Part shown: positions 32,661-64,000 of the stretch, one piece after another
Layout: the number at the start of each line of letters is the position of its first letter
How positions within the stretch are numbered: the first letter of the stretch is position 1
Sequence record: MK308675.1
DNA length: 64,000 nucleotides
Reading direction: 5' to 3' (one strand)
Notes under the pieces: generated by a model
Told to the model about the DNA's origin: nothing
What the model saw: the letters and a program-made list of their open reading frames with translations, nothing else
Databases searched by the model: none
Position numbers and translations under genes: made by a program

Positions 32661-32725
32661 GTCTTTATTTTTTAACAAATCAAATAGTGCTATACACTTA
32701 TTTCTTCTGGCCGGAGAACTATTAA

Positions 32726-33715
32726 ATGTCAATCCAAACGCTATACAAATACCAGTTCGACAAGTACGGAAATAACTCCGCTAACTTGATTCCAAATGAA
32801 CCGGTGAAGTTCGATACTCCGCGTATCGTTCCTTTCGTACTGAGAGAAGGTAACTTCTATCAGAAAGACTTAACTATCCGAGATAAAGCAGACAACAGTT
32901 TATTGGTCTTAGGTACCGACTATAACCTAGTTGGCCTAGATGCTGACCTTACAGCAGAGACAGGCTTAACTGTAGCAGGCGGTATCGAGTTAGCCGATAA
33001 AACATTCATCGGTGAATTGGAAGTTACCTATCGCTGCGTAGGTGGACCGCAAGGCGAATCGCGCGCTCTTTATCTGGAACTAATCGAAGCAATCACAAAC
33101 GCAGGAACTAACCCTAGTGTTCTTTGGGAATCCATCATTGGTCGCCCTCAGCGCTTCCCGCCTGAAATCCACTCACACTTACTGAGCGAACTGACTGAAC
33201 TTGAGAAACTCTATCAGTCAATGCAGGACATGACTAATGCAATCGTCAACTCTAAGCCGATGTATGGTTCCAACCAAAACATCTTAGAACAGATTGAAGG
33301 CATCATTCAAATCCAGGCAGCGATGCAGTTAGCACTTAACCGTGTGGCTACAGGCGTAGGCTCAGTCGCGTTAATTAACCAAGTGCGTGATAATCTCGCT
33401 AACGTTCATAAGCAGTTCGATAAGACGACCAACACCGTTGGCGTTACTTGGGCAGACGTAGCAGTTATCCCTGAAGCGGACTTCAACAACGCACGCGGCG
33501 TCATCTCTATTGTTGATGCAACCGACTCCATGCAGATGGATTTCGATATTTCGTGGACTACCGCGAAAGACCCGTCTTACACACACTATGGCCATATCGG
33601 CACAGATGAACTCATCAACGCGATGCAAGTCATTAAACAGTCAGGTAACGTTGTAGTTCAAATTCGAACCACTAAAGACGCAACCGTCAAGACTAAATTT
33701 ACTCACCTGCTTTAA
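32726..33715 (+). CDS. Baseplate/tail attachment protein (same N-terminal family as 18583..19581)
   Basis: YQFDKYGNNSANLI...G.FY...G.DY and WESIIGRPQRFPPEIHSH motifs. Confidence 0.7.
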   Translation: MSIQTLYKYQFDKYGNNSANLIPNEPVKFDTPRIVPFVLREGNFYQKDLTIRDKADNSLLVLGTDYNLVGLDADLTAETGLTVAGGIELADKTFIGELEVTYRCVGGPQGESRALYLELIEAITNAGTNPSVLWESIIGRPQRFPPEIHSHLLSELTELEKLYQSMQDMTNAIVNSKPMYGSNQNILEQIEGIIQIQAAMQLALNRVATGVGSVALINQVRDNLANVHKQFDKTTNTVGVTWADVAVIPEADFNNARGVISIVDATDSMQMDFDISWTTAKDPSYTHYGHIGTDELINAMQVIKQSGNVVVQIRTTKDATVKTKFTHLL

Positions 33716-53864: not shown

Positions 53865-54308
53865 TTACTCCATTCCGTCTAGGATAAGAGGGATGCTCAC
53901 TTCTAGGTCAACGTCACCGTCTTCAAGATGGTATTTGAAACGTGCCTTACCTAGTTCAGCATCTAGAGGTGCGTCGTCGTTTAGACAACAGAACCAAGTC
54001 GCTCTTAGCTTGCCAGGTTCGTTAAAGTCGCTAAGTTGCAGCGGCGGAAGGTTCGCCCACGTACCGTCATTCTCGTCCATGTCTTCCCATTCTTTGTTAA
54101 AGATGAAGTGTAGTGTATTTTCAAACATGTTGTTGATGACAGACGTAGTGGTAGTATATGCGTCCAGTTTAGACGCACGGCCATCGATGTGACAAACGGC
54201 TAGGTAGCCAGTATCAACCATCTCTACTGCACCCTTTGCGTGCTCATTTAGAAGTCCTGTCTCAGAAACGACTTTAACAGAAACTGGATTTACTTTTAGG
54301 CCTTTCAT
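53865..54308 (-). CDS. Hypothetical protein
   Basis: 147 aa; GAGG SD. Confidence 0.65.
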   Translation of the reverse strand: MKGLKVNPVSVKVVSETGLLNEHAKGAVEMVDTGYLAVCHIDGRASKLDAYTTTTSVINNMFENTLHFIFNKEWEDMDENDGTWANLPPLQLSDFNEPGKLRATWFCCLNDDAPLDAELGKARFKYHLEDGDVDLEVSIPLILDGME

Positions 54309-54378
54309 GTTGTTATCCTCTAATTTTATGTGTCATACTCGACACGTTTTATTCACTACTATAAGGAATAGTAATTTG

Positions 54379-54930
54379 ATGCAAATGTTCTTAACCGTAC
54401 TTCGCTTCTTTGTTCTTCTACCTTTCCACTGGCTTGTGACGTTGCTTTGCTACATCCTAGCTCCAGTGTTACCTTTAACCGCTATTGGTAAAGAGACGTT
54501 ACCTAAATGGCTTTCGTGGTTCCAAACGCCTGACGCTCCACTCGATGGAGATTTAGGTTTCCGTTTAGAACATGAAGCCAAAGGAACACATCCTTATCTA
54601 CAGCGCGTCTATTGGTTATGGAGAAATCCAGCATATGGTTTCTCTTGGGGACTCTTAGCTTATCAATCTATCAAAGGAATGAAGATTCATACCTTGGGCG
54701 ATATTAAAGCGAAAGATGACCCTTATAAGGCAGGTTGGTCCATTAGCTGGACTGAGGACAAGAAGGCGTTTCAAGTACGGGCGTTTGTTCCAACCATCCC
54801 TGGTAAGTGTTTAAAGTTTAGGTTCGGTTGGAAACTGCGTTGGTTAGTCAACGACTGTAACGGAATTGCGAATGGCTCCAAACGTAAGTTCGTCTTCACT
54901 TGCAACCCGTTCAAATCTCGCCGTCCTTAA
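54379..54930 (+). CDS. Phage membrane-associated protein
   Basis: N-terminal hydrophobic helix; LPKWLSWFQTPDAPLDGD and WLWRNPAYG motifs; start after AAGGA SD. Confidence 0.65.
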   Translation: MQMFLTVLRFFVLLPFHWLVTLLCYILAPVLPLTAIGKETLPKWLSWFQTPDAPLDGDLGFRLEHEAKGTHPYLQRVYWLWRNPAYGFSWGLLAYQSIKGMKIHTLGDIKAKDDPYKAGWSISWTEDKKAFQVRAFVPTIPGKCLKFRFGWKLRWLVNDCNGIANGSKRKFVFTCNPFKSRRP

Positions 54931-54944
54931 TTAAGTTAGCCATT

Positions 54945-54975
54945 GGTCTCTTACTTCGGTAAGAGACCTTTTTTC
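54945..54975 (+). terminator. Intrinsic terminator
   Basis: GGTCTCTTAC-TTCG-GTAAGAGACC plus T-tract; second hairpin 54994-55011 serves the minus strand. Confidence 0.85.
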
Positions 54976-55023
54976 TTTTTACCCAAAAGAAAAGGCCCTA
55001 TTCAAAGGGCCCCGTAGGTAGTG

Positions 55024-55848
55024 TTAGTTTTCTAGTGCTTTAACTAGAGTTTTAGCTTCCGGTAGGGTCAGCTTAGATTCCAATAGGAATTTATCCAGAG
55101 CGTCACATACAGGAATCGTAGTGATGACGGTATTGTCCATCGTGATAGGCTGAGTCTTATCACGGACCCAAAGAATCTTCTTCTGACCATTGCGGAACTC
55201 GCGCCCAGTAAGCCCACACTTCTTAGAGCCCATGCGAGCCTTGAAGTTAGAGAACGATAGTGCATATGTGCCGCCATGGTTCTCTACAAAGACACCGAAC
55301 TCCATGTATGCGCGTGCTAAGAACAGTTCATTGTTCTCACTGCGCATCTCTTCGCTAAAGACGAAGAACGGAAGACCTTCTTGATTGAAAGACTTATGTT
55401 CCGGGACAATAGCGGCCTTTTCACCAGCGGCTAAAATGGTGGCACCGCAGTAACGTTCGCGAATTCCGCGTAAAGCTTCAGGGTTGAAGAGTGTTGCACA
55501 AAGCTTGTTACGAACTTCCATGAGGTGCTTACGTTGCGGCGTACTCGTATCATGGGACTCGAACAAGCGAGCTTTCTCTTCATTAGCGTCGTGGCGAACC
55601 AGACACACGTTACCTTTCTGATAAGGTAAGGCATTGTCGATACGCTCAATAGTAACACTATCCTCTTTACGTTCATCGTTCGAGAGAACCATGGGTAGGC
55701 CAGTATAATCACAGACACCGCCGTTGCGACGGAATAATTCACGCCAGTCATCGAGCGACAAGCGGAAACCAATATCACGAGAGCGCTTGCTTTGTGCTTT
55801 CGTTTCGTATTTGCGGTCCACTAATTGCTCATCGTACCATACAGACAT
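55024..55848 (-). CDS. HNH/His-Me-finger-like protein with duplicated domain
   Basis: CDYTG...TIERIDNALPYQKGNVCLV..DAN; degenerate second copy CGLTG...DNTVIT; start moved to 55848 (AAGGAG SD). Confidence 0.65.
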   Translation of the reverse strand: MSVWYDEQLVDRKYETKAQSKRSRDIGFRLSLDDWRELFRRNGGVCDYTGLPMVLSNDERKEDSVTIERIDNALPYQKGNVCLVRHDANEEKARLFESHDTSTPQRKHLMEVRNKLCATLFNPEALRGIRERYCGATILAAGEKAAIVPEHKSFNQEGLPFFVFSEEMRSENNELFLARAYMEFGVFVENHGGTYALSFSNFKARMGSKKCGLTGREFRNGQKKILWVRDKTQPITMDNTVITTIPVCDALDKFLLESKLTLPEAKTLVKALEN

Positions 55849-55898
55849 AATGTCTCCTTTGTTGGTCGTTGTAAAAAGATTAAGGTAAGAATAAGAAA

Positions 55899-55924
55899 CC
55901 CTCATCTCCCGAAAGAGATGAGGG
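55899..55924 (-). terminator. Intrinsic terminator
   Basis: CCCTCATCTC-CCGAAA-GAGATGAGGG. Confidence 0.8.
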
Positions 55925-55932
55925 GGATGTTA

Positions 55933-56874
55933 TTAAGGTTGTTTAACAGAGCACTTGAATTGACGCTGGCCAAAACGAGTCATGCGGTAAGCTGCTAAGA
56001 ACTCACCGACCAGTTCATATTCGAAGTCAGTATGGCCGTCACCACTGGCAGCAGTTCGAACTAACTTCATGTCCCAACGTTTTTCGTATGCGGTCGCTCC
56101 GACGGATTCGTCCGAGATTCGAAGAATACGGTCACCGTCAGCATCATAGACGATGACGTCACCGTTCACTTCAACTGACTTACGGAGTACGTCGTTTTTA
56201 TCGTACATCAATGTCATGTGCTGTTCGTAATTATCGCCGATTGAAACGAACGAGTAGAAGTCCGCGCCTTGCGCCGTATGCGTATGCCATTGTCGTGCAG
56301 ACGAAATGATGTCACCGCTAACGTAGTTTACAAGCGCACTGCTGAACTCATGTCCTTTACCGCGCTTAGCAGTGAAGGTTGTCTTCGGTCCCTTGGTAGG
56401 CGTTGAAATGCAATGTGTTTCAAACCCGTCTTCCGTCATAGTAATGAGATAGTTGAACTTCTCTCTATTTTCCGTCAGGAAACATTCGTCGGCGGGTTTA
56501 GGATTAAGGCTCTTCATTGGCTCCGGATAAGAACCGAAACGACATGGCGCCTCAGGATTCTTAGGGAAACGGAACACTTCCTTACCGTTTAGACAATGTA
56601 GTGCCAAGTCGAAGTAAACGAAACTTTCGGTCTCGACAAGAGTTCGGCAGAACTTACTGAGAGCAGAGCCAGTCAGGTGCTCCGCACCAGTTAATTGAGA
56701 GAAGTCACATTGGAACAGTTCCCATGCGTTTAGTTTAAGTACGCCCATGCGAAGGATGAAATCCATGTCCATCTCAGAGACGTCGCTTAGAATCGCGCGC
56801 AGGATAGCTTTAGTTACAGGGACTTTAGTAAGGGCAGACTTAGCTTTAGTTAGGTCAACGGTTTTAATTTTCAT
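55933..56874 (-). CDS. Hypothetical early protein with alpha-CTD-like N-terminus
   Basis: VSEMDMDFILRMGVLKLNAWELFQCDFSQLTGAEHLTGSALSKF pattern; YDKND/YDADGD beta repeats. Confidence 0.55.
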   Translation of the reverse strand: MKIKTVDLTKAKSALTKVPVTKAILRAILSDVSEMDMDFILRMGVLKLNAWELFQCDFSQLTGAEHLTGSALSKFCRTLVETESFVYFDLALHCLNGKEVFRFPKNPEAPCRFGSYPEPMKSLNPKPADECFLTENREKFNYLITMTEDGFETHCISTPTKGPKTTFTAKRGKGHEFSSALVNYVSGDIISSARQWHTHTAQGADFYSFVSIGDNYEQHMTLMYDKNDVLRKSVEVNGDVIVYDADGDRILRISDESVGATAYEKRWDMKLVRTAASGDGHTDFEYELVGEFLAAYRMTRFGQRQFKCSVKQP

Positions 56875-56979
56875 AATGATATTTCCTTTCAATATCGTTT
56901 CTTATTTTAAGAAACATTTAAGTAAAGCTGCTACGTTTTCACAGCCGAGGTACGTCCTCTTTAGGACGCATGCATAAAG

Positions 56980-56987
56980 GTAATATA
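56980..56987 (-). promoter_or_regulatory. phiKZ-type early promoter motif TATATTAC
   Basis: GTAATATA on plus strand upstream of 55933..56874. Confidence 0.6.
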
Positions 56988-57080
56988 GGTGACAGTTTTT
57001 ATTGAGTGACAAGCCTTTTAATCTTATGGTGCACCAACGCGCTCTATCCCGACTTTGGTCGGCCTAAGAGGGAATATAAA

Positions 57081-57812
57081 ATGATTACTAATCAAAGCTT
57101 CATTACGCAGCTTTATACTTTTAGTAGCGGTACCCTGACGCCTCTCCCTTACTTCATCATAGAGGAACAGGACTACGACTACTTAAAGGAAACCGCCGAT
57201 GTTGCAAGCGGACTTTATCCAATTGTAGATGAAGACATCAGTGATGGGATACGTGCCGACACAATCGGCATACGCGACGATAAGGTCATGTTCGTACAAG
57301 GGAACGGACAAGAGATTGAACTCAAAGTTAATCGCGGCTATGTACCTAAACATAGTGCCATTCGTAACTATAGTAAGGAAGACTTCGTTGAAGTTTCTGA
57401 CGAACTATACGTAAGAAAAGAAGCAGGACGTTCCGCATGGGGTGTTGACGAATGGGTCAAGTTAAAGTCAGGACACAAGGTCTCTGAGATTTTCTACTAC
57501 GATGCTCGCACTCAAAGCACGGTAGGTAAACAAGCTACAGGTATCGTGGTAATCGCAGAAGATACTCGATTCTTTAACCGAGTCATTGTGCCGGGCGATA
57601 GCATCCTAATCGACTTCGCACATGAACTACAAAACTTTTCCTTGCAAGTAGCAGCCAATGGTTCTGTTGAGTTCACCATTGCTGACAGCATCGATATAGA
57701 AGCCATGGAAATTAATGAAGACGGTGAGTTGGTTTTTGAACATGCACTCGCTAGTTCAGACACGGCTAACGTCTACGTCGATGACGACGGCTACCTAATC
57801 GTAGAAGAATAA
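57081..57812 (+). CDS. Probable virion structural/adaptor protein
   Basis: Start moved to ATG 57081 (GAGGG SD); acidic beta-rich; heads the depolymerase operon. Confidence 0.6.
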   Translation: MITNQSFITQLYTFSSGTLTPLPYFIIEEQDYDYLKETADVASGLYPIVDEDISDGIRADTIGIRDDKVMFVQGNGQEIELKVNRGYVPKHSAIRNYSKEDFVEVSDELYVRKEAGRSAWGVDEWVKLKSGHKVSEIFYYDARTQSTVGKQATGIVVIAEDTRFFNRVIVPGDSILIDFAHELQNFSLQVAANGSVEFTIADSIDIEAMEINEDGELVFEHALASSDTANVYVDDDGYLIVEE

Positions 57813-57825
57813 AGAGGTAAAGGAA

Positions 57826-58380
57826 ATGGTTAAAACAGTAGTAGGTCGCATCCGTGGCGATAAGTACAACGGCCATGATGTCAGCCAGGCCTATAAGAAA
57901 CTAGACGAAGTCTACGATGATGGTAAAGCGTATGTCTGTAAACAGGACGTAGCTGAAAACTCCAACACTCCTTTATCCGATGAAACTAAATGGCAGCTCT
58001 TTGCCACCTTTACTACTTACGGTACCTACTTCACGCATGACTCCAACCGAGCTTATGTCGACGGTGACCAAGTGTGGATTGATAACAAGGTCTACGTAGC
58101 AATCGATGACATTCCAGCAGATAGTGACATCCCGTTAACGGACGATACTAAGTGGGAAGTCCGCCTTACCGGCGGAGCGGAAAGTTTGCCAGTCGAGTTA
58201 AGACATGCGATTGATTTCAGAACCGTAGATGAAGATTTGCGACAACTATCTGAAAACCTTCTTATGGCAGCTCCTACTAAACCTCCAAGATTGCCCGGAC
58301 TTATAAAGGTTTGCCCTTCTTTGAGTAAGCGTTATATTTCCGTAGGCACAACAGCGGCTTCTGATTGGGAGGAATTCTAA
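57826..58380 (+). CDS. Tail-associated protein with two CBM5/12-like repeats
   Basis: YKKLDEVYDDGKAYVC...ETKW; C-terminal G..KV....KRYISVGT....DW motif. Confidence 0.65.
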   Translation: MVKTVVGRIRGDKYNGHDVSQAYKKLDEVYDDGKAYVCKQDVAENSNTPLSDETKWQLFATFTTYGTYFTHDSNRAYVDGDQVWIDNKVYVAIDDIPADSDIPLTDDTKWEVRLTGGAESLPVELRHAIDFRTVDEDLRQLSENLLMAAPTKPPRLPGLIKVCPSLSKRYISVGTTAASDWEEF

Positions 58381-59645
58381 TGACTGATATCTATCTAAAG
58401 AAAGTAGCGACCGGTTCTGGTAACGGTTCGGGCTGGGACAATGCTAAAGCGTTTACGGACTCCACGGCTTTAAGAGTGGACCTAGAGACCTTACGCGCAG
58501 GCGATACTCTCTATATCGGTAACGACTTCGGTAAACGTGACTGGCTAGAAACAGACATCCTGATGATAGTCAACGCTGTGAACGGTACAGAAGATGACCC
58601 TATCACTTTCTGTGGCTCTGCCGTAACAGACACTACGGAACTACATGCGGCAGCAAAAGGTAAGGGCCCTATCTTCCATGGCGGGGCAGAGGCGCCGATG
58701 CGCCTAGGTGACTCAAAAGGAGTAGACTTCCTCAGAGTTGAAAGAGACCACTATAAATTCTTGGGATTAAACCTGGTCAACGCAGGTTACTTCCTGACAA
58801 TACGCAATCGTCCAGTCACTGGGATAACGGTGGCAGACTGTCAGACCTACGGAACGGAATTAGTTTTCTCTTGCGGCGCAGGAGACTCGGACGTTACTGG
58901 CTTGGATGTCTCCAACTTCATAGCTGGTAATGTCTCTGGTGGTTTTGGTCTCTTTAGAAACGGTAAGAAATTAAGTTTCAGCGACGTGCATGTCTCCCAT
59001 AGTGAGGAGACGACTGACGTCTTCGGACTAAAGTTCGGTGCAGCCGGAGATGCGAGCAGCGTAGTCGAAGAGATACTCGTCCGCGATTCTTCTTTTACAG
59101 GCGGCTATAACTTTAACGGCTCGCCTTCTTACGTTCAGGGCGACGGCATTATTGCCGAGATTGGCACTTCTGAAATAGACATCGACAACGTGCGCATTAG
59201 TCTATACGGCGATGCCGCAATTGACCTGAAGTCCACCAATGCCAGAATCAAACGTGCGGACATCCAGAGATGTAAGTACGGCATCAAGCTGTGGGGCCTT
59301 GGCGAGAACTTAATCGAAAACTCCATCGTGAGTAACTGTTCCTTAGGTGCCATTCAGTGCATCGCTGACATCGTGGCTAAGAACAGTACCTTTAAGGGCA
59401 CGGCCGACAGTAAATGCTTATTGAACCTAACGAAGAATAACCTCGACGGGGATAAGCTGGGCGAACTAACCCTGGAAGATTGCGTCCTGGAATATCCAGA
59501 CCCAAGCCGTCTTATCTACGGCTATGCCGGTAACAAAGTACACATGAAGAACTGCATGGTGAACGGAGTGCTCATTAAAGAGACTAAGTTCCTTCTACCG
59601 GCGCAGGGCTCATTCGGCATTGTAGATGACCTAACTGACTTTTAA
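58380..59645 (+). CDS. Right-handed beta-helix (pectate-lyase-like) depolymerase
   Basis: IYLKKVATGSGNGSGWDNA start; GDGI and DAAIDLK coil motifs; TAATG coupling, GGGAGG SD. Confidence 0.7.
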   Translation: MTDIYLKKVATGSGNGSGWDNAKAFTDSTALRVDLETLRAGDTLYIGNDFGKRDWLETDILMIVNAVNGTEDDPITFCGSAVTDTTELHAAAKGKGPIFHGGAEAPMRLGDSKGVDFLRVERDHYKFLGLNLVNAGYFLTIRNRPVTGITVADCQTYGTELVFSCGAGDSDVTGLDVSNFIAGNVSGGFGLFRNGKKLSFSDVHVSHSEETTDVFGLKFGAAGDASSVVEEILVRDSSFTGGYNFNGSPSYVQGDGIIAEIGTSEIDIDNVRISLYGDAAIDLKSTNARIKRADIQRCKYGIKLWGLGENLIENSIVSNCSLGAIQCIADIVAKNSTFKGTADSKCLLNLTKNNLDGDKLGELTLEDCVLEYPDPSRLIYGYAGNKVHMKNCMVNGVLIKETKFLLPAQGSFGIVDDLTDF

Positions 59646-59659
59646 GGAAGGAGACTAAC

Positions 59660-61618
59660 ATGTCTAAAACTGTTGTGGGTCGAATTCGTGGCGATAAATA
59701 TAAAGGCCACAATCCGAACCAAATTTACAAGAAGTTGGACGAAGTCTACATTTCAGGTATGGCATTCCTTTGTCTCGAGGATATAGAGATTAACTCTAAT
59801 ATCCCTTTGACGGATGTTACGAAGTGGCAAGAGTTCGCTTCGCTTGAAACTCTACGTATCCACTACGCACATGACGTGAATGCTGAGTACTTTAAAGACG
59901 AGCAGATGTGGGTAGGCGGTAAAGTGTATGTTGCTTTAGCAGATATCCCTGAAAACTCTAATGTAGATTTAACCGACGACACTAAGTGGGAAGAACTTCT
60001 TGCTAGTGAAGCTCTTGCTCCTACGGCTAACGACAACATCACCATCACAGGCTTTACTGACCTGGGCGATGGTAATTGGCAAGTGACGCCCCCTGCGGGT
60101 TACGTACATTACGTACATATTGCTGGCGCCTCGCCTAACTACTTCGCTGAAGTTTCTACTATTGTAGAACTTTCTAAGATTGGTGACTGGACGCGTGAAG
60201 GCGGACAGCTAACTATCCGTTGGCCTTCTAACCTAAACGACCTGGACGTGTTCCTCACTATGGGTTCTAGCTCCTCTGTGGCATACTACGGCATGGAAGT
60301 AGACGAGCCTGGGGAAATCCATAACCAAAACACTTACGGTGGTTTGCGTGGCTTTACAGTTACGGCTCTGGCACATCTGTTCCATTGTAAAGCAGAGAAT
60401 GCTAACTTCCACGGTTTCGATATGCAGTTCCCTGGAGCTACACTGAGTCATTGTGAGAGCCATCACAACGGTCAGTGGGACAAAGGCGAGACAGGTAACA
60501 ATGTCGGTCACGGTGTTCTTATGCGTCGTGGCGGTACAGTGCGCCACCATAAGTCATATTGTCAAGCTGAAGATGGTTACCAAATTGGTACAGCCGTTCA
60601 AGGCAATGTTGCAGAGAACGATGAGTTTACTCTGGAACACTGTGAAGCGTACTACTGTTCTGAGGACATGTTCGATATTAAAGAGACAGGTAAGAAATTA
60701 ACCATTCGTCACTTTAGAGGACATGGCGCACTCGACTCAGCAATCAACTACCACCCGAATGTAGGCTCGGGTTTAGTAGAGATTACAGATGGGCGCTTCT
60801 CAGGCACCGTACAGATGCTTCGCGTCGCTCAGGTTGAATCTAGCATCCCTGCTAAGTTCAACACTGCCCGTAATGTCTTCGATGCTTCTAACCGTGGCTG
60901 GTCAGATAGTTCTGCTCCATGTTTCGATTGGAAGGCCAGTATCGATAATGCAGATGCTTACTTTGTCTCTATGGCGGACGTTTTCATCGGCGGCGGTACT
61001 CGCGGTATCTCTGACAAGCACGTAGTCAACATCAAGGGCGCTGGTAAGGTTAAACTGTTTAACCCGACCATTCACGTGCCTTCTACTCCGAACGCAGGAG
61101 ACGTTTCTGCAATCGGTATGTATGGTACGGCCGCTGTTGAGATTTACAACGCGTGCCTAACTAACTATGGCGGTGGTACCCGCGGCATCCTTGAAGTTGA
61201 CGATAACACTCGCAGTATTAAGATTGCAGATTCTGTAATGTATGTCAAAGACGGGGACGACAATACGGTCTATGTGACTGTTGGTTCGACTACCTATACT
61301 AAGGCAGACATTGAAGGTGCAAACTTCGGCGGGGAAGGCAACATCGTAGACGGTAGCGTGGAGCTAACTAATCTATACATCAAATCGCCTAACTACATGG
61401 ACGAAGCTAATAACCTACTAGCTCCTCTTTACATTACGCCACATATGGCAAACCACGGTCTAGCTGTGAATGCGCCAATGAAAGACGTAATGGGTCTACC
61501 ATTCAACCACTGGAGTTGGATGGGCGGTTCTGAGAACGTTAGTATGGGCGTTGGCGCTTACCATGCCTACAGCGGACGAATGCTCCGTGCTAAGAATTCA
61601 CATACTCTAGCGAAATAA
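59660..61618 (+). CDS. Tailspike/depolymerase: CBM-like N-terminus plus beta-helix
   Basis: N-terminus paralogous to 57826..58380; NANFHGF, AEDGYQI and EDMFDIK beta-helix motifs. Confidence 0.72.
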   Translation: MSKTVVGRIRGDKYKGHNPNQIYKKLDEVYISGMAFLCLEDIEINSNIPLTDVTKWQEFASLETLRIHYAHDVNAEYFKDEQMWVGGKVYVALADIPENSNVDLTDDTKWEELLASEALAPTANDNITITGFTDLGDGNWQVTPPAGYVHYVHIAGASPNYFAEVSTIVELSKIGDWTREGGQLTIRWPSNLNDLDVFLTMGSSSSVAYYGMEVDEPGEIHNQNTYGGLRGFTVTALAHLFHCKAENANFHGFDMQFPGATLSHCESHHNGQWDKGETGNNVGHGVLMRRGGTVRHHKSYCQAEDGYQIGTAVQGNVAENDEFTLEHCEAYYCSEDMFDIKETGKKLTIRHFRGHGALDSAINYHPNVGSGLVEITDGRFSGTVQMLRVAQVESSIPAKFNTARNVFDASNRGWSDSSAPCFDWKASIDNADAYFVSMADVFIGGGTRGISDKHVVNIKGAGKVKLFNPTIHVPSTPNAGDVSAIGMYGTAAVEIYNACLTNYGGGTRGILEVDDNTRSIKIADSVMYVKDGDDNTVYVTVGSTTYTKADIEGANFGGEGNIVDGSVELTNLYIKSPNYMDEANNLLAPLYITPHMANHGLAVNAPMKDVMGLPFNHWSWMGGSENVSMGVGAYHAYSGRMLRAKNSHTLAK

Positions 61619-61633
61619 AAAAAAAATAAGAGT

Positions 61634-61657
61634 CCCTACTGGCCGAAGCCAGTAGGG
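61634..61657. terminator. Bidirectional terminator
   Basis: CCCTACTGGC-CGAA-GCCAGTAGGG with A-tract before and T-tract after. Confidence 0.85.
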
Positions 61658-61663
61658 GTCTTT

Positions 61664-61975
61664 TTATTCGTCTTCAGACGGGAACGTCTCGTCGATTACG
61701 AGGCCTTGTTTCTTAAGAGACTTCGCTCGAGCCACAGCGACGTCGATGTGACAAACCATGTGACAAAGAAACTTAGAAGCATCGCGTTTGCCTACCTGGT
61801 GAGATTCATACCACCACTTAAAACCGTCTAGGTAAATACATGCGTTCTTATCGCCGTCTTCAGTTACTTTAAGTAACATTGACTGCGGGATAAAGAAGTC
61901 GATGTAAATATGCTCAAGACCTTGCTTCTTGGCTTTCTTGATTTGCTTTTTAACGCGCTTTTTATTACCTGCCAT
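61664..61975 (-). CDS. Hypothetical basic protein
   Basis: Probable ATG 61975 (GAGG SD). Confidence 0.6.
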   Translation of the reverse strand: MAGNKKRVKKQIKKAKKQGLEHIYIDFFIPQSMLLKVTEDGDKNACIYLDGFKWWYESHQVGKRDASKFLCHMVCHIDVAVARAKSLKKQGLVIDETFPSEDE

Positions 61976-62012
61976 AATAGGTGCCTCTTTTATCTTAAGT
62001 TCGAAATGTTTT

Positions 62013-62303
62013 TTATTTTTGGTCGTGGTCAACCGATATGGTACAAAGGCTTAAACTAAAGTAGACCGTCTTATGGTCGACGACGCCTTTGTAGACGCGA
62101 TTGATGCCGTTCTCTGTAAAGTCTTTAACGTCCGTTTTCTTTACCCAAAGATAGTGACTACCGTGTCGTCCGCAGTCGACGTACATGTGTTGTACCACGC
62201 CGCCTAAATCACGGACTGCGTCGCTAACCTCATAAGGCTTCGGGAAAGCGTCCACGTTGAAAGAAGATAGGCACAGAAGTAGTAAAGCGAATAATTTTTC
62301 CAT
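62013..62303 (-). CDS. Secreted hypothetical protein
   Basis: Sec signal peptide MEKLFALLLLCLSSFNVDA; GGAG-like SD. Confidence 0.6.
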   Translation of the reverse strand: MEKLFALLLLCLSSFNVDAFPKPYEVSDAVRDLGGVVQHMYVDCGRHGSHYLWVKKTDVKDFTENGINRVYKGVVDHKTVYFSLSLCTISVDHDQK

Positions 62304-62335
62304 GGTGTTCTCTCTTTAAGATAGAAATGATTAAG

Positions 62336-62359
62336 CTCCCTCTCCCGAAGGAGAAGGAG
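62336..62359 (-). terminator. Intrinsic terminator after the chemoreceptor gene
   Basis: CTCC-C-TCTCC-CGAA-GGAGA-A-GGAG, same style as the other phage terminators. Confidence 0.65.
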
Positions 62360-62367
62360 TACTTAGT

Positions 62368-64000
62368 TTATACGGTGAACTTGCTTAGAGCAACACCTTG
62401 CTCTTCACATAGTTCCATTACTTCACCCAGTTCGTCTTTAGACTTAGCAGAGCCGTCAGAGATTTCCTGAGATAGGTCTTTCACTCGAGTAGCGTTGAGG
62501 TTAATCTCATTGCTTACAAGCGATTGCTGTTCTGATGCTGTAGCGGTCTGAATAGACATGCTGGTAATCTCAGAGACAGCTTTAGAGATGTCGTTAAGGT
62601 TAGAAGCGGCAACAGCTGCTTTATCAATTGCCCCATCCGTAGAAGCCTTACCGTCCTCAATGGTCTCAAAGACTTCTTGAGCGTGGTTAGTAATCTCTTC
62701 TAGAATGGTATTGATTTGAACTGTGCTTTCTTGCGTATCCTTGGCTAGCTTACGAACTTCGTCTGCTACCACTGCAAAACCTCGACCTGCATCGCCTGCA
62801 CGTGCTGCTTCAATTGCTGCGTTAAGTGCAAGTAAGTTGGTTTGGTCTGCCACGCCAGAAATAACTTCCAGTACTTCGGTGATACTTGCCGTAGAACCGA
62901 TTAGGTTAGTAGTAGTGTTTACAGCGCTCTCCATTACTTCACCTACGTGAGTAATAGCCGCTGATGTAGCTTCTACAGAATCCAGACCAGAACGTACAGA
63001 GGTTTCTGCCTCTTCTGTACTAGCCGCGGTAGATTGAGCATTAGATGCAATCTCTACGCTAGATGCTGCCATCTCTTCCATAGCTGAAGCTAGTGACTCT
63101 AGCTCTGCCATTTGTTCAGTTACATTGCTTACGTTCTGAGTAGACACTGCTCCCACAGAGATGACTGCATTACTAATGCCGCCAGATATCTCTTTAAGGC
63201 GCTGTACGTCTTTCTGAAGGTTCGCAGCAAACGTATTGACAGATTGTGCCATGGCAGCAAACTCTTCGTCAGAGTCTTCGCTAATGCGTTTAGTGAGGTC
63301 TGCTTCACCAGAAGCTAAATCCTGTAAAGCATTGCGTAGTTCTTGAAGAGGACGCATTAGGTACATCGCTGTTACAATAGCTAGACCAGATACTACAGCA
63401 GTGGTAATACCGGCAATGATAAGTAGTAGTACAAGTAAGTCTTTGACTGGCTGCTCAATAACAGAAGTCGGTTTCTTAACGTCTACTACCCAACCCGCAG
63501 AAGGAATAGTAACTAACACAGTAGTCATTTCTTCTTTAGGTGCTTTCTGCTGACGGATGTTCTTGCCGATTAAGTACTCGTCTTTATGTGCAATGATGTT
63601 ACTCGTTGCTTTACTGTAAAGGACAAGTTCCGTACCGTTAACATGAGCAATGCGGTTTAACTCATCGCCTAGTTCGCCTAGGTTAGTATCAAAGAACACA
63701 GCACCGTCATTCTTACCGTTCTTGTAAACAGGAATGGCAATTGACGTTACGAGTTCTTGAGTGGCTAAGTCTACGTACGGTTCAGTTTGGATAGGTTTAC
63801 CCGCAGCTATTGAGTCCTTGTACCAGTCGCGTGTACGGCCGTCGTAGTTCGCGGGCATACGGCTTTCCGGTACAGACGTAGTAAACTCACCTTCGCGGTT
63901 TACATAACCCACCATGTCGAAAGCATTCAGTAGAGTAGCTCCCTTTAATAGGTGGGCTGCTTCTTCCATACTTTCGGTTTTGGATAGACCATCTGCGATA
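62368..64000 (-). CDS. Methyl-accepting chemotaxis protein (dCache_1, TM, HAMP, MA); 5' end beyond the window
   Basis: YDGRTRDWY...EPYVD dCache; TM2; HAMP RPL...DLTKRI...DEEFAAMA; [34 protein letters not shown]; frame stays open to base 64000. Confidence 0.95.

Follow-up and report, generated by a model that had tools for sequence, protein, structure and literature searches.

The 64,000-nucleotide stretch of record MK308675.1 analysed here (the window) ends within the gene for an intact chemoreceptor carrying an amino-acid-type dCache sensor, and we confirmed that this gene belongs to a bona fide jumbo phage genome. The phage, of approximately 290 kb, has the marine bacterium Vibrio mediterranei as its stated host. 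The encoded methyl-accepting chemotaxis protein (MCP) is an ordinary member of a well-understood family, and it is its viral location that is unusual. On the evidence of its sequence, we give roughly even chances to the reading that it is a functional chemoreceptor of the dCache_1AA type, resembling PctA of Pseudomonas aeruginosa, which this jumbo Vibrio phage carries as an accessory gene and uses in infection.

Architecture of the phage receptor

The receptor is encoded on the minus strand, in a frame that is open from its stop codon (62368-62370) up to the window edge, and the ATG at 63969 that begins the entry in the list of open reading frames is therefore an internal Met. The window holds residues 68-610 and the stop. 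The remaining 67 codons, which encode the N-terminus, the first transmembrane helix (TM1) and the start of the sensor's first helix, occupy the 201 nucleotides past the window end (L001:10401-10601). Retrieving this upstream sequence had been proposed in an earlier, sequence-only reading of the window, and the public record indeed supplied both TM1 and the start of the gene. The full-length product has 610 residues (QAX96201.1, from MK308674.1) and is labelled 'hypothetical protein' in GenBank.

Pfam searches with the window portion of the protein identified MCPsignal (1e-39; 136.6 bits versus a cutoff of 34.6), dCache_1 (5.5e-15; 56 bits versus a cutoff of 45) and HAMP (2.8e-10), and MCP-like_PDC_1 was also matched. 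Hydropathy analysis of the receptor placed transmembrane helices at approximately residues 8-26 (TM1) and 255-277 (TM2), on either side of the periplasmic sensor, with HAMP following TM2. An AlphaFold2 model built from 56 homologs, with a mean predicted local distance difference test (pLDDT) value of 82, displays a long N-terminal helix (4-72), two alpha/beta modules, a transmembrane helix (245-297) and a long helical hairpin. The full MCP architecture claimed from the window is thus borne out by the complete 610-residue gene, in which TM1, dCache_1, TM2, HAMP and MCPsignal are all present.

When the sensor was aligned to that of PctA (PDB 5ltx; E-value 4e-23), the motif residues Y119, R124, W126, Y127, Y142, D144 and D171 were in register column by column, each carrying the PctA number minus 2; Y127 is the equivalent of PctA Y129. 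The sequence-only reading had noted Y-x4-R-x-W and the residues that follow it at PctA spacing, and this correspondence is exact; all of these residues align to PctA. Judging from the alignment, the match is one of homology, not chance. The amino-acid motif has been defined as two parts, Y121, R126 and W128 on the one hand and Y144 and D173 on the other, that lie 13-17 residues apart; the last position has to be D and not N (PMC8915833). In the phage receptor, 15 residues separate W126 from Y142, and D171 is retained as D and not as the loss-of-function N; both the N-terminal and the C-terminal parts of the protein's motif agree with the published definition. The motif R, W and last D are invariant in an alignment of the phage receptor with 56 cellular homologs (57/57 sequences).

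The top sequence matches among solved structures were the sensors of PctA, PctB, PctC, Mlp37, CtaA and Mlp24, all of which are receptors for amino acids, gamma-aminobutyric acid (GABA) or taurine. Foldseek returned the same set (PctA, PctC, CtaA, Mlp24, Mlp37), with template modelling scores of 0.6-0.73 over 212-247 columns. The middle residue of the R-x-W motif is D in the phage receptor and P in at least 90% of homologs. The sole sizeable indel with respect to the 56 homologs lies in the membrane-proximal module, from which 13 residues are deleted, so that 38 residues separate residue 217 from TM2, versus 51 in the homologs. The shortening of this module, suspected earlier from the window alone, is therefore real; the shortened module still forms four strands in the model, with pLDDT above 80. 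An amino-acid ligand is predicted, and the D-for-P change and the remodelled proximal module may affect the specificity.

On the cytoplasmic side, TM2 and HAMP together (76 residues) and the signalling domain (280 residues, from residue 331) are equal in length to those of all 56 homologs. The signalling domain aligns without gaps to that of the V. fluvialis homolog and, save for a compensating 3-residue shift near the C-terminus, to that of PctA; relative to Tar and Tap of the E. coli K-12 record, it is longer by two symmetric 14-residue insertions, each in a different hairpin arm. The receptor belongs to the 40H length class, which has four extra heptads with respect to 36H and in which PctA, PctB and PctC are listed (PMC12691637). 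In V. cholerae, most receptors are 40H membrane proteins that are thought to join the cluster II/F6 arrays, and a length change of one heptad blocks a receptor's integration into the array (PMC7534058).

The hairpin tip is the CheA/CheW contact surface in known receptors, and 30 of its 34 residues (453-486) lie in columns that are invariant across the 57 sequences, phage receptor included. The adaptation region holds E/Q pairs at 361-362, 375-376 and 396-397, the first two of which align with Tar methylation sites 1 and 3, and the strict methylation consensus is matched twice (371-380 and 392-401). Of the two methylation-type sites proposed from the window, AMEEMAASS agrees with the strict consensus and corresponds to Tar site 3, but ASEQQS fails that consensus; Tar site 4 maps away from it, within an unreliable stretch of the alignment. 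The C-terminus (residues 606-610; window 62371-62385) is of the F-x-V/I type, with F608 invariant in 57 of the 57 aligned receptors, and differs from the CheR-tethering pentapeptide that ends E. coli Tar.

Relatives in bacteria and in other phages

A word-indexed search of 5.8 billion clusters yielded, as nearest proteins, receptors of 622-629 residues from V. fluvialis, V. aerogenes, Photobacterium, Marinobacter and Pseudomonas, with 31-39% identity, and an exhaustive HMMER search over 1.84 billion cluster representatives detected none closer than 39%. The nearest cellular relatives are the 622-624-residue receptors of V. fluvialis, V. aerogenes, V. scophthalmi and Photobacterium (33-39% identity), whose TM2, HAMP and signalling regions equal those of the phage receptor in length. 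No V. mediterranei locus for the receptor was present among the genome-scan matches listed, and a search of IMG/VR with the receptor protein gave no relative above 39% identity. Identity to the homologs does not exceed 29% in the sensor and 43% in the signalling domain and reaches 70-80% in the tip region (440-500), a spread that resembles the one seen among the cellular homologs themselves. In a neighbour-joining tree with 100 bootstraps, the phage receptor is sister to a 35-member, mostly Vibrionaceae clade (82/100) and has the longest terminal branch (0.755 versus a median of 0.076). With the sequences at hand, a specific donor cannot be named.

The receptor keeps 92 of the 115 positions that are at least 90% conserved (80%; leave-one-out), the lowest count in the alignment, and this number suggested decay or relaxed selection. 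The suggestion was removed by a control, in which 24 cellular receptors at equal distance were found to keep 70-94% of the family-conserved positions. Because receptors from cells have lost as many conserved positions at the same distance, there is no sign of decay, and a value of 80% within the range of its peers indicates that purifying selection acted on the protein despite identities of at most 39%. The phage receptor thus looks like a normally constrained member of an otherwise unsampled lineage.

With regard to known systems, the amino-acid and GABA receptors PctA, PctB and PctC (PDB 5ltx, 5lt9, 5ltv) share with the phage receptor the architecture, the motif residues and their spacing, and the 40H class; they are its best solved-structure matches by sequence and, beside Mlp24, are among its top folds. 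Identity to them is approximately 32% overall and at most 29% in the sensor. In contrast to these proteins, the phage receptor has a proximal module that is 13 residues shorter and is encoded by a virus without che genes. Mlp24 (McpX) and Mlp37 of V. cholerae are 40H dCache receptors for amino acids and taurine that work via F6 polar arrays; their folds are similar to that of the phage receptor (template modelling scores of 0.59-0.72), whereas their sensors are only 21-24% identical to it and their genes are chromosomal. PDB titles show that members of the family differ in specificity, PctA binding many amino acids, PctC GABA and Mlp37 taurine.

We searched 50,697 phage records by tblastn with the joined CheA, W, R, B, Y and Z sequences of E. 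coli K-12, and found none of these in the genome of the receptor's phage. The earlier remark that the window contains no che genes therefore extends to the whole genome, and the receptor would need the Che proteins of the host. The joined query matched 122 records, among them zero Vibrio phages, and most of the matches were unannotated fragments or evidently bacterial contigs filed as phage. Used as a query on the same set, the receptor matched five records: the three Yong phages that carry it and two doubtful ones, namely Pseudomonas phage Y13, whose sibling record Y1 holds a whole che cluster, and an E. coli P1 record of 126.5 kb that carries aer and is presumably oversized for P1. It was absent from the relatives of its own phage, and is essentially unique among these records.

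Many records filed as phage that contain bacterial chemotaxis genes look like host DNA or mis-binned sequence (OQ572403.1, CAKLQH020000002.1, OR851186.1, MH445380.1). The che cluster of 'Pseudomonas phage Y1' lies on a 95.8-kb record, glnG and glnL are found on contigs of 'Acinetobacter phage MD-2021a', and 2.5-kb 'Salmonella phage' fragments are 93% identical to E. coli che genes. Host-like records of this kind need to be removed when che genes carried by phages are surveyed.

In IMG/VR, 242 MCP-like stretches were detected. Of the best 80 of these, 50 are situated no more than 5 kb from the end of their contig, and we take them to be probable prophage-edge host genes; 10 lie more than 10 kb inside. 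One of these 10 belongs to contig IMGVR_UViG_3300016725_000002 (161,660 bp), which encodes a complete 581-residue receptor with a four-helix-bundle (4HB) sensor (L082:9089-10834, plus strand), located more than 56 kb from the contig ends, with a tail sheath gene and an HNH endonuclease approximately 5 kb away. It provides a second, independent example of a receptor carried by a phage, of an unrelated type.

For phages of ammonia oxidisers, CheR, CheY and an MCP have been listed without further study (bioRxiv 10.64898/2026.05.02.722434). These genes and the 4HB receptor from IMG/VR are presumably accessory, like the receptor described here; they are 4HB or uncharacterised, they stem from predicted or uncultivated phages, and none has been described as an amino-acid dCache protein. 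In the survey behind the amino-acid motif, viruses receive no mention (PMC8915833). In the literature searched, we found no account of a cultured phage that carries a complete chemoreceptor; it is thus the viral context that appears to be new, the protein family being already known. Neither a transcriptome nor a proteome of the receptor's phage came to light in these searches.

Genomic neighbourhood and the accessory block

The rest of the window is plainly of phage origin. Its products include tail-fibre and virion structural proteins (1,901, 1,455 and 1,444 residues), as well as an SbcC-like nuclease subunit, a UvsX-like recombinase, RNase H and an HNH endonuclease. Upstream of the receptor, beyond the window, phage open reading frames continue, and the arrangement around the receptor is identical in three complete circular genome records. 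In the literature searched, the only paper to mention these phages places them near the jumbo Vibrio phages BONAISHI and pir03; it is silent on chemotaxis, describes relatives of the receptor's phage as lytic, and gives XC31 proteins, numbered before and after the receptor, as best matches of pir03 proteins (PMC7765460). The sequence-only reading had named host chromosome upstream of the gene as the sign of a chimeric assembly. The upstream sequence is phage, the three records agree and proteins shared with pir03 flank the gene; since phage genes lie on both sides, it is not an assembly chimera.

A sibling phage, vB_VmeM-Yong MS32 (MK308677.1, L002), has a genome of 278,116 bp as compared to 290,532-290,537 bp in the carriers. 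By megablast coverage and per-gene presence, MS32 is identical on both flanks and is without a block of approximately 12.4 kb. Twelve genes are wholly absent from it, including those for the receptor, the YadA-like anchor and beta-helix proteins that resemble tail spikes, and the genes at the edges, which are not paralogous, are truncated and fused by a single deletion. The receptor gene is accessory, because MS32 lacks the block that carries it; as a host-type gene that is variably present and lies outside the core, it has the genomic hallmarks of a phage accessory ('moron' or auxiliary) gene.

The coordinates of the receptor and of its surroundings are given in Table 1. The gene directly upstream of the receptor lies 302-742 nucleotides past the window end and encodes a trimeric-autotransporter anchor with almost no passenger domain. 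Such a phage-encoded outer-membrane mini-anchor is odd by itself, and its G+C content at third codon positions (GC3) is low (0.397). The 96-residue downstream neighbour had no Pfam, PHROG or PADLOC match. With these two genes flanking it, the receptor stands in a short run of envelope-directed genes. A role in defence or anti-defence was considered and set aside, as PADLOC gave no hit for the receptor or three neighbours.

Table 1. Coordinates of the receptor, its parts and neighbouring features (window positions unless otherwise indicated)
Feature	Coordinates	Strand	Evidence or remark
MCP gene, phage-encoded	62368..64000	-	Open frame; full coding sequence QAX96201.1; Pfam; AlphaFold2 model
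Periplasmic dCache_1 sensor, residues 68-254 (domain ~27-254)	63439..63999	-	Pfam; PDB matches; Foldseek; indels
Membrane-proximal module of sensor, ~residues 186-254	63439-63645	-	13 residues shorter than in homologs
Amino-acid binding motif region (Y119, R124, W126, Y127; Y142, D144; D171)	63688..63846	-	PctA alignment
TM2, ~residues 255-277	63370..63438	-	Hydropathy windows; continuous model helix 245-297
HAMP, residues 277-329	63214..63372	-	Pfam 2.8e-10
Cytoplasmic signalling and adaptation bundle, residues 331-610, 40H	62371..63210	-	Pfam MCPsignal; Tar/Tap, PctA and Vibrio alignments
Hairpin tip, residues 453-486	62743..62844	-	Conserved columns among 57 aligned sequences
Stem-loop 3 nucleotides past the stop: 10-bp core stem, UUCG loop, weak U-tail	62332..62365	-	-21.3 kcal/mol, z = -3.1
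Downstream neighbour, 96 residues, signal-peptide-like N-terminus (judged by eye)	62013..62303	-	Translation of open reading frame
Gene directly upstream, 146 residues, signal peptide and YadA-like anchor	L001:10702-11142 (MK308674.1 209330-209770)	-	Pfam 3.2e-10
Window part of the ~12.4-kb accessory block absent in MS32	53865..64000		Continues past the window through the YadA-anchor gene

The gene had been credited with a phage-style terminator. A hairpin with a UUCG loop is indeed present just past the stop; it has a weak U-tail, however, and was not among the terminators called by the scan. At the other end of the gene, the leader CGGAGAACTAT that precedes the receptor ATG (L001:10602-10625, minus strand) is common with that of a virion structural gene (32726-33715, phrog_2163; leader at window 32700-32728), and the layout of hairpin, short spacer, ribosome-binding site and ATG recurs at many genes of this phage.

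Other parts of the accessory block merit a brief description. It contains a free-standing HNH endonuclease gene (55024-55905, minus strand; phrog_3118, 1e-43), the N-terminal part of which also matches PHROGs for a sigma-70 decoy and for the Srd anti-sigma factor. Three genes on the plus strand (57826-58380, 58365-59645 and 59660-61618) include two that share an N-terminal module of approximately 130 residues (MxKTVVGRIRGDKY...) and, between them, one for a right-handed beta-helix protein. This set (57826-61618) looks like exchangeable tail-spike or depolymerase cassettes, and all of it is missing in MS32.

Possible role during infection and alternative explanations

The features that the proposed mechanism requires, namely the 40H class, the conserved tip, methylation-type sites and reliance on host Che proteins, are present in so far as sequence can reveal them. 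The receptor would be made during infection and put into the inner membrane by host machinery, where its conserved tip would allow it to mix with the 40H receptors of the host's polar F6 array. Its membrane-distal pocket would bind L-amino acids or closely related compounds (GABA or taurine, for example), lowering CheA activity, and CheR and CheB of the host would adapt it at the E/Q sites. Infected cells would in this way acquire or retain attraction towards amino acids for as long as the protracted latent period of a jumbo phage lasts, and phage yield and release would be favoured where nutrients and hosts concentrate. That an infected cell does navigate by such virus-encoded amino-acid taxis during the latent period, through a receptor supplied by the phage, we propose tentatively, at somewhat below even chances.

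The sequence-only reading had suggested that the phage inserts a receptor of its own into host arrays, steering infected cells or jamming their signalling. It is partly supported here: its descriptive half is upheld, and the proposed insertion into arrays, by which infected cells would acquire amino-acid taxis, is plausible. The evidence fits a working receptor that depends on the host F6 machinery, and this earlier idea is therefore the best available explanation.

Several observations weigh against a working receptor used in infection. Provided that MS32, as deposited, is a viable isolate, growth on the isolation host does not require the receptor. The receptor start is preceded, at a distance of 36 nucleotides, by the end of a strong 13-bp terminator hairpin (z = -5.7), and a sigma-70 scan gave 5 sites versus 4.4 in shuffled sequence, none of them convincing upstream of the receptor. 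Family-conserved residues are changed both in the proximal module (G190, Y191, G200, P206) and just past the tip (R488D, Q504T, G506H), and these changes, together with the 13-residue shortening, could alter signal transmission. The three carrier phages are identical in receptor sequence, which renders selection within the phage lineage unmeasurable, and the divergence of the protein may have taken place in the phage or, ahead of a recent transfer, in a bacterium that has not been sampled. Codon usage was considered as a sign of long residence in the phage and is uninformative. The T-ending codons described earlier as phage-like do place the gene at the 93rd percentile of window genes (T at third positions, 0.339), but phage and Vibrio codon pools correlate at r = 0.84 and the receptor fits the phage pool (r = 0.82) and Vibrio pools of similar G+C (0.78-0.85) equally well, so that codon usage fails to separate the two.

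The main rival, which we regard as unlikely, is that the receptor was captured from an unsampled Vibrionaceae-like bacterium and travels as neutral cargo in a dispensable block. The complete loss of the 12.4-kb block in MS32 would be expected of a passenger, as would the absence of the gene from all other phage records, relatives included, a GC3 that is 2.6 standard deviations under the mean of the window genes, and the terminator directly upstream with no promoter identified. A passenger is harder to reconcile with a protein that, despite the longest terminal branch, shows no frameshift, stop or loss of a functional motif, and no donor above 39% identity exists among the 1.84 billion representatives. 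The gene also has phage-type hairpins on either side and a phage-type leader, and lytic phage genomes are normally streamlined against useless genes of 1.8 kb. The view that DNA of the host was mis-joined into the assembly, or that the record is contaminated, draws on the obvious bacterial che genes held by several other 'phage' records. It is effectively excluded by the identical arrangement in three complete circular records, by the tail-fibre, virion, recombinase and nuclease genes across the other 62 kb of the window and the phage open reading frames on the far side, and by flanks that are both common to MS32; moreover, with no bacterial protein above 39% identity, the gene cannot be contaminating DNA of any sequenced Vibrio.

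The remaining alternatives accept that the receptor is used and concern what it does. It might lock or disturb CheA control regardless of ligand, causing smooth swimming or reversals and altering dispersal or flagellar rotation. The tip is intact, as such a modulator would need, and R488D, Q504T, G506H, the proximal-module changes and the 13-residue deletion are places where signalling bias could have shifted; nevertheless, a pure jammer would require neither the ligand pocket nor the adaptation sites, which are conserved, and cellular receptors at the same distance are changed at conserved positions about as often, which makes this explanation improbable. We consider it quite improbable that the receptor senses a different ligand, such as an amine, a peptide or a compound derived from the host or from algae, or that it serves a chemosensory output other than motility. 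The D that stands within R-x-W in place of the P of at least 90% of homologs, a sensor no more than 29% identical to that of any homolog and the range of specificities from PctA to PctC and Mlp37 are compatible with another ligand, but both halves of the amino-acid motif are complete, and Vibrio membrane receptors of the 40H class have been attributed to the motility (F6) pathway (PMC7534058).

The reading of a functional amino-acid receptor employed in infection leaves a concrete object for testing: a diverged sensor with an intact pocket, a naturally short proximal module and a sibling phage without the gene. The known auxiliary genes of phages concern metabolism, photosynthesis, toxins and defence. 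The present findings suggest, rather than prove, that a phage may add a sense to the infected cell; if true, it would be the first case to be characterised in which a virus feeds sensory input directly into the behaviour of bacteria, and the 4HB receptor on the 162-kb contig suggests that the strategy is possibly a recurrent one of large phages. Use of the receptor would mean that a virus is able to redirect the swimming of its host, which would bear on 'virocell' biology and the acceptance of foreign members by receptor arrays, as well as on marine microscale ecology at nutrient hot spots, particles and algal surfaces.

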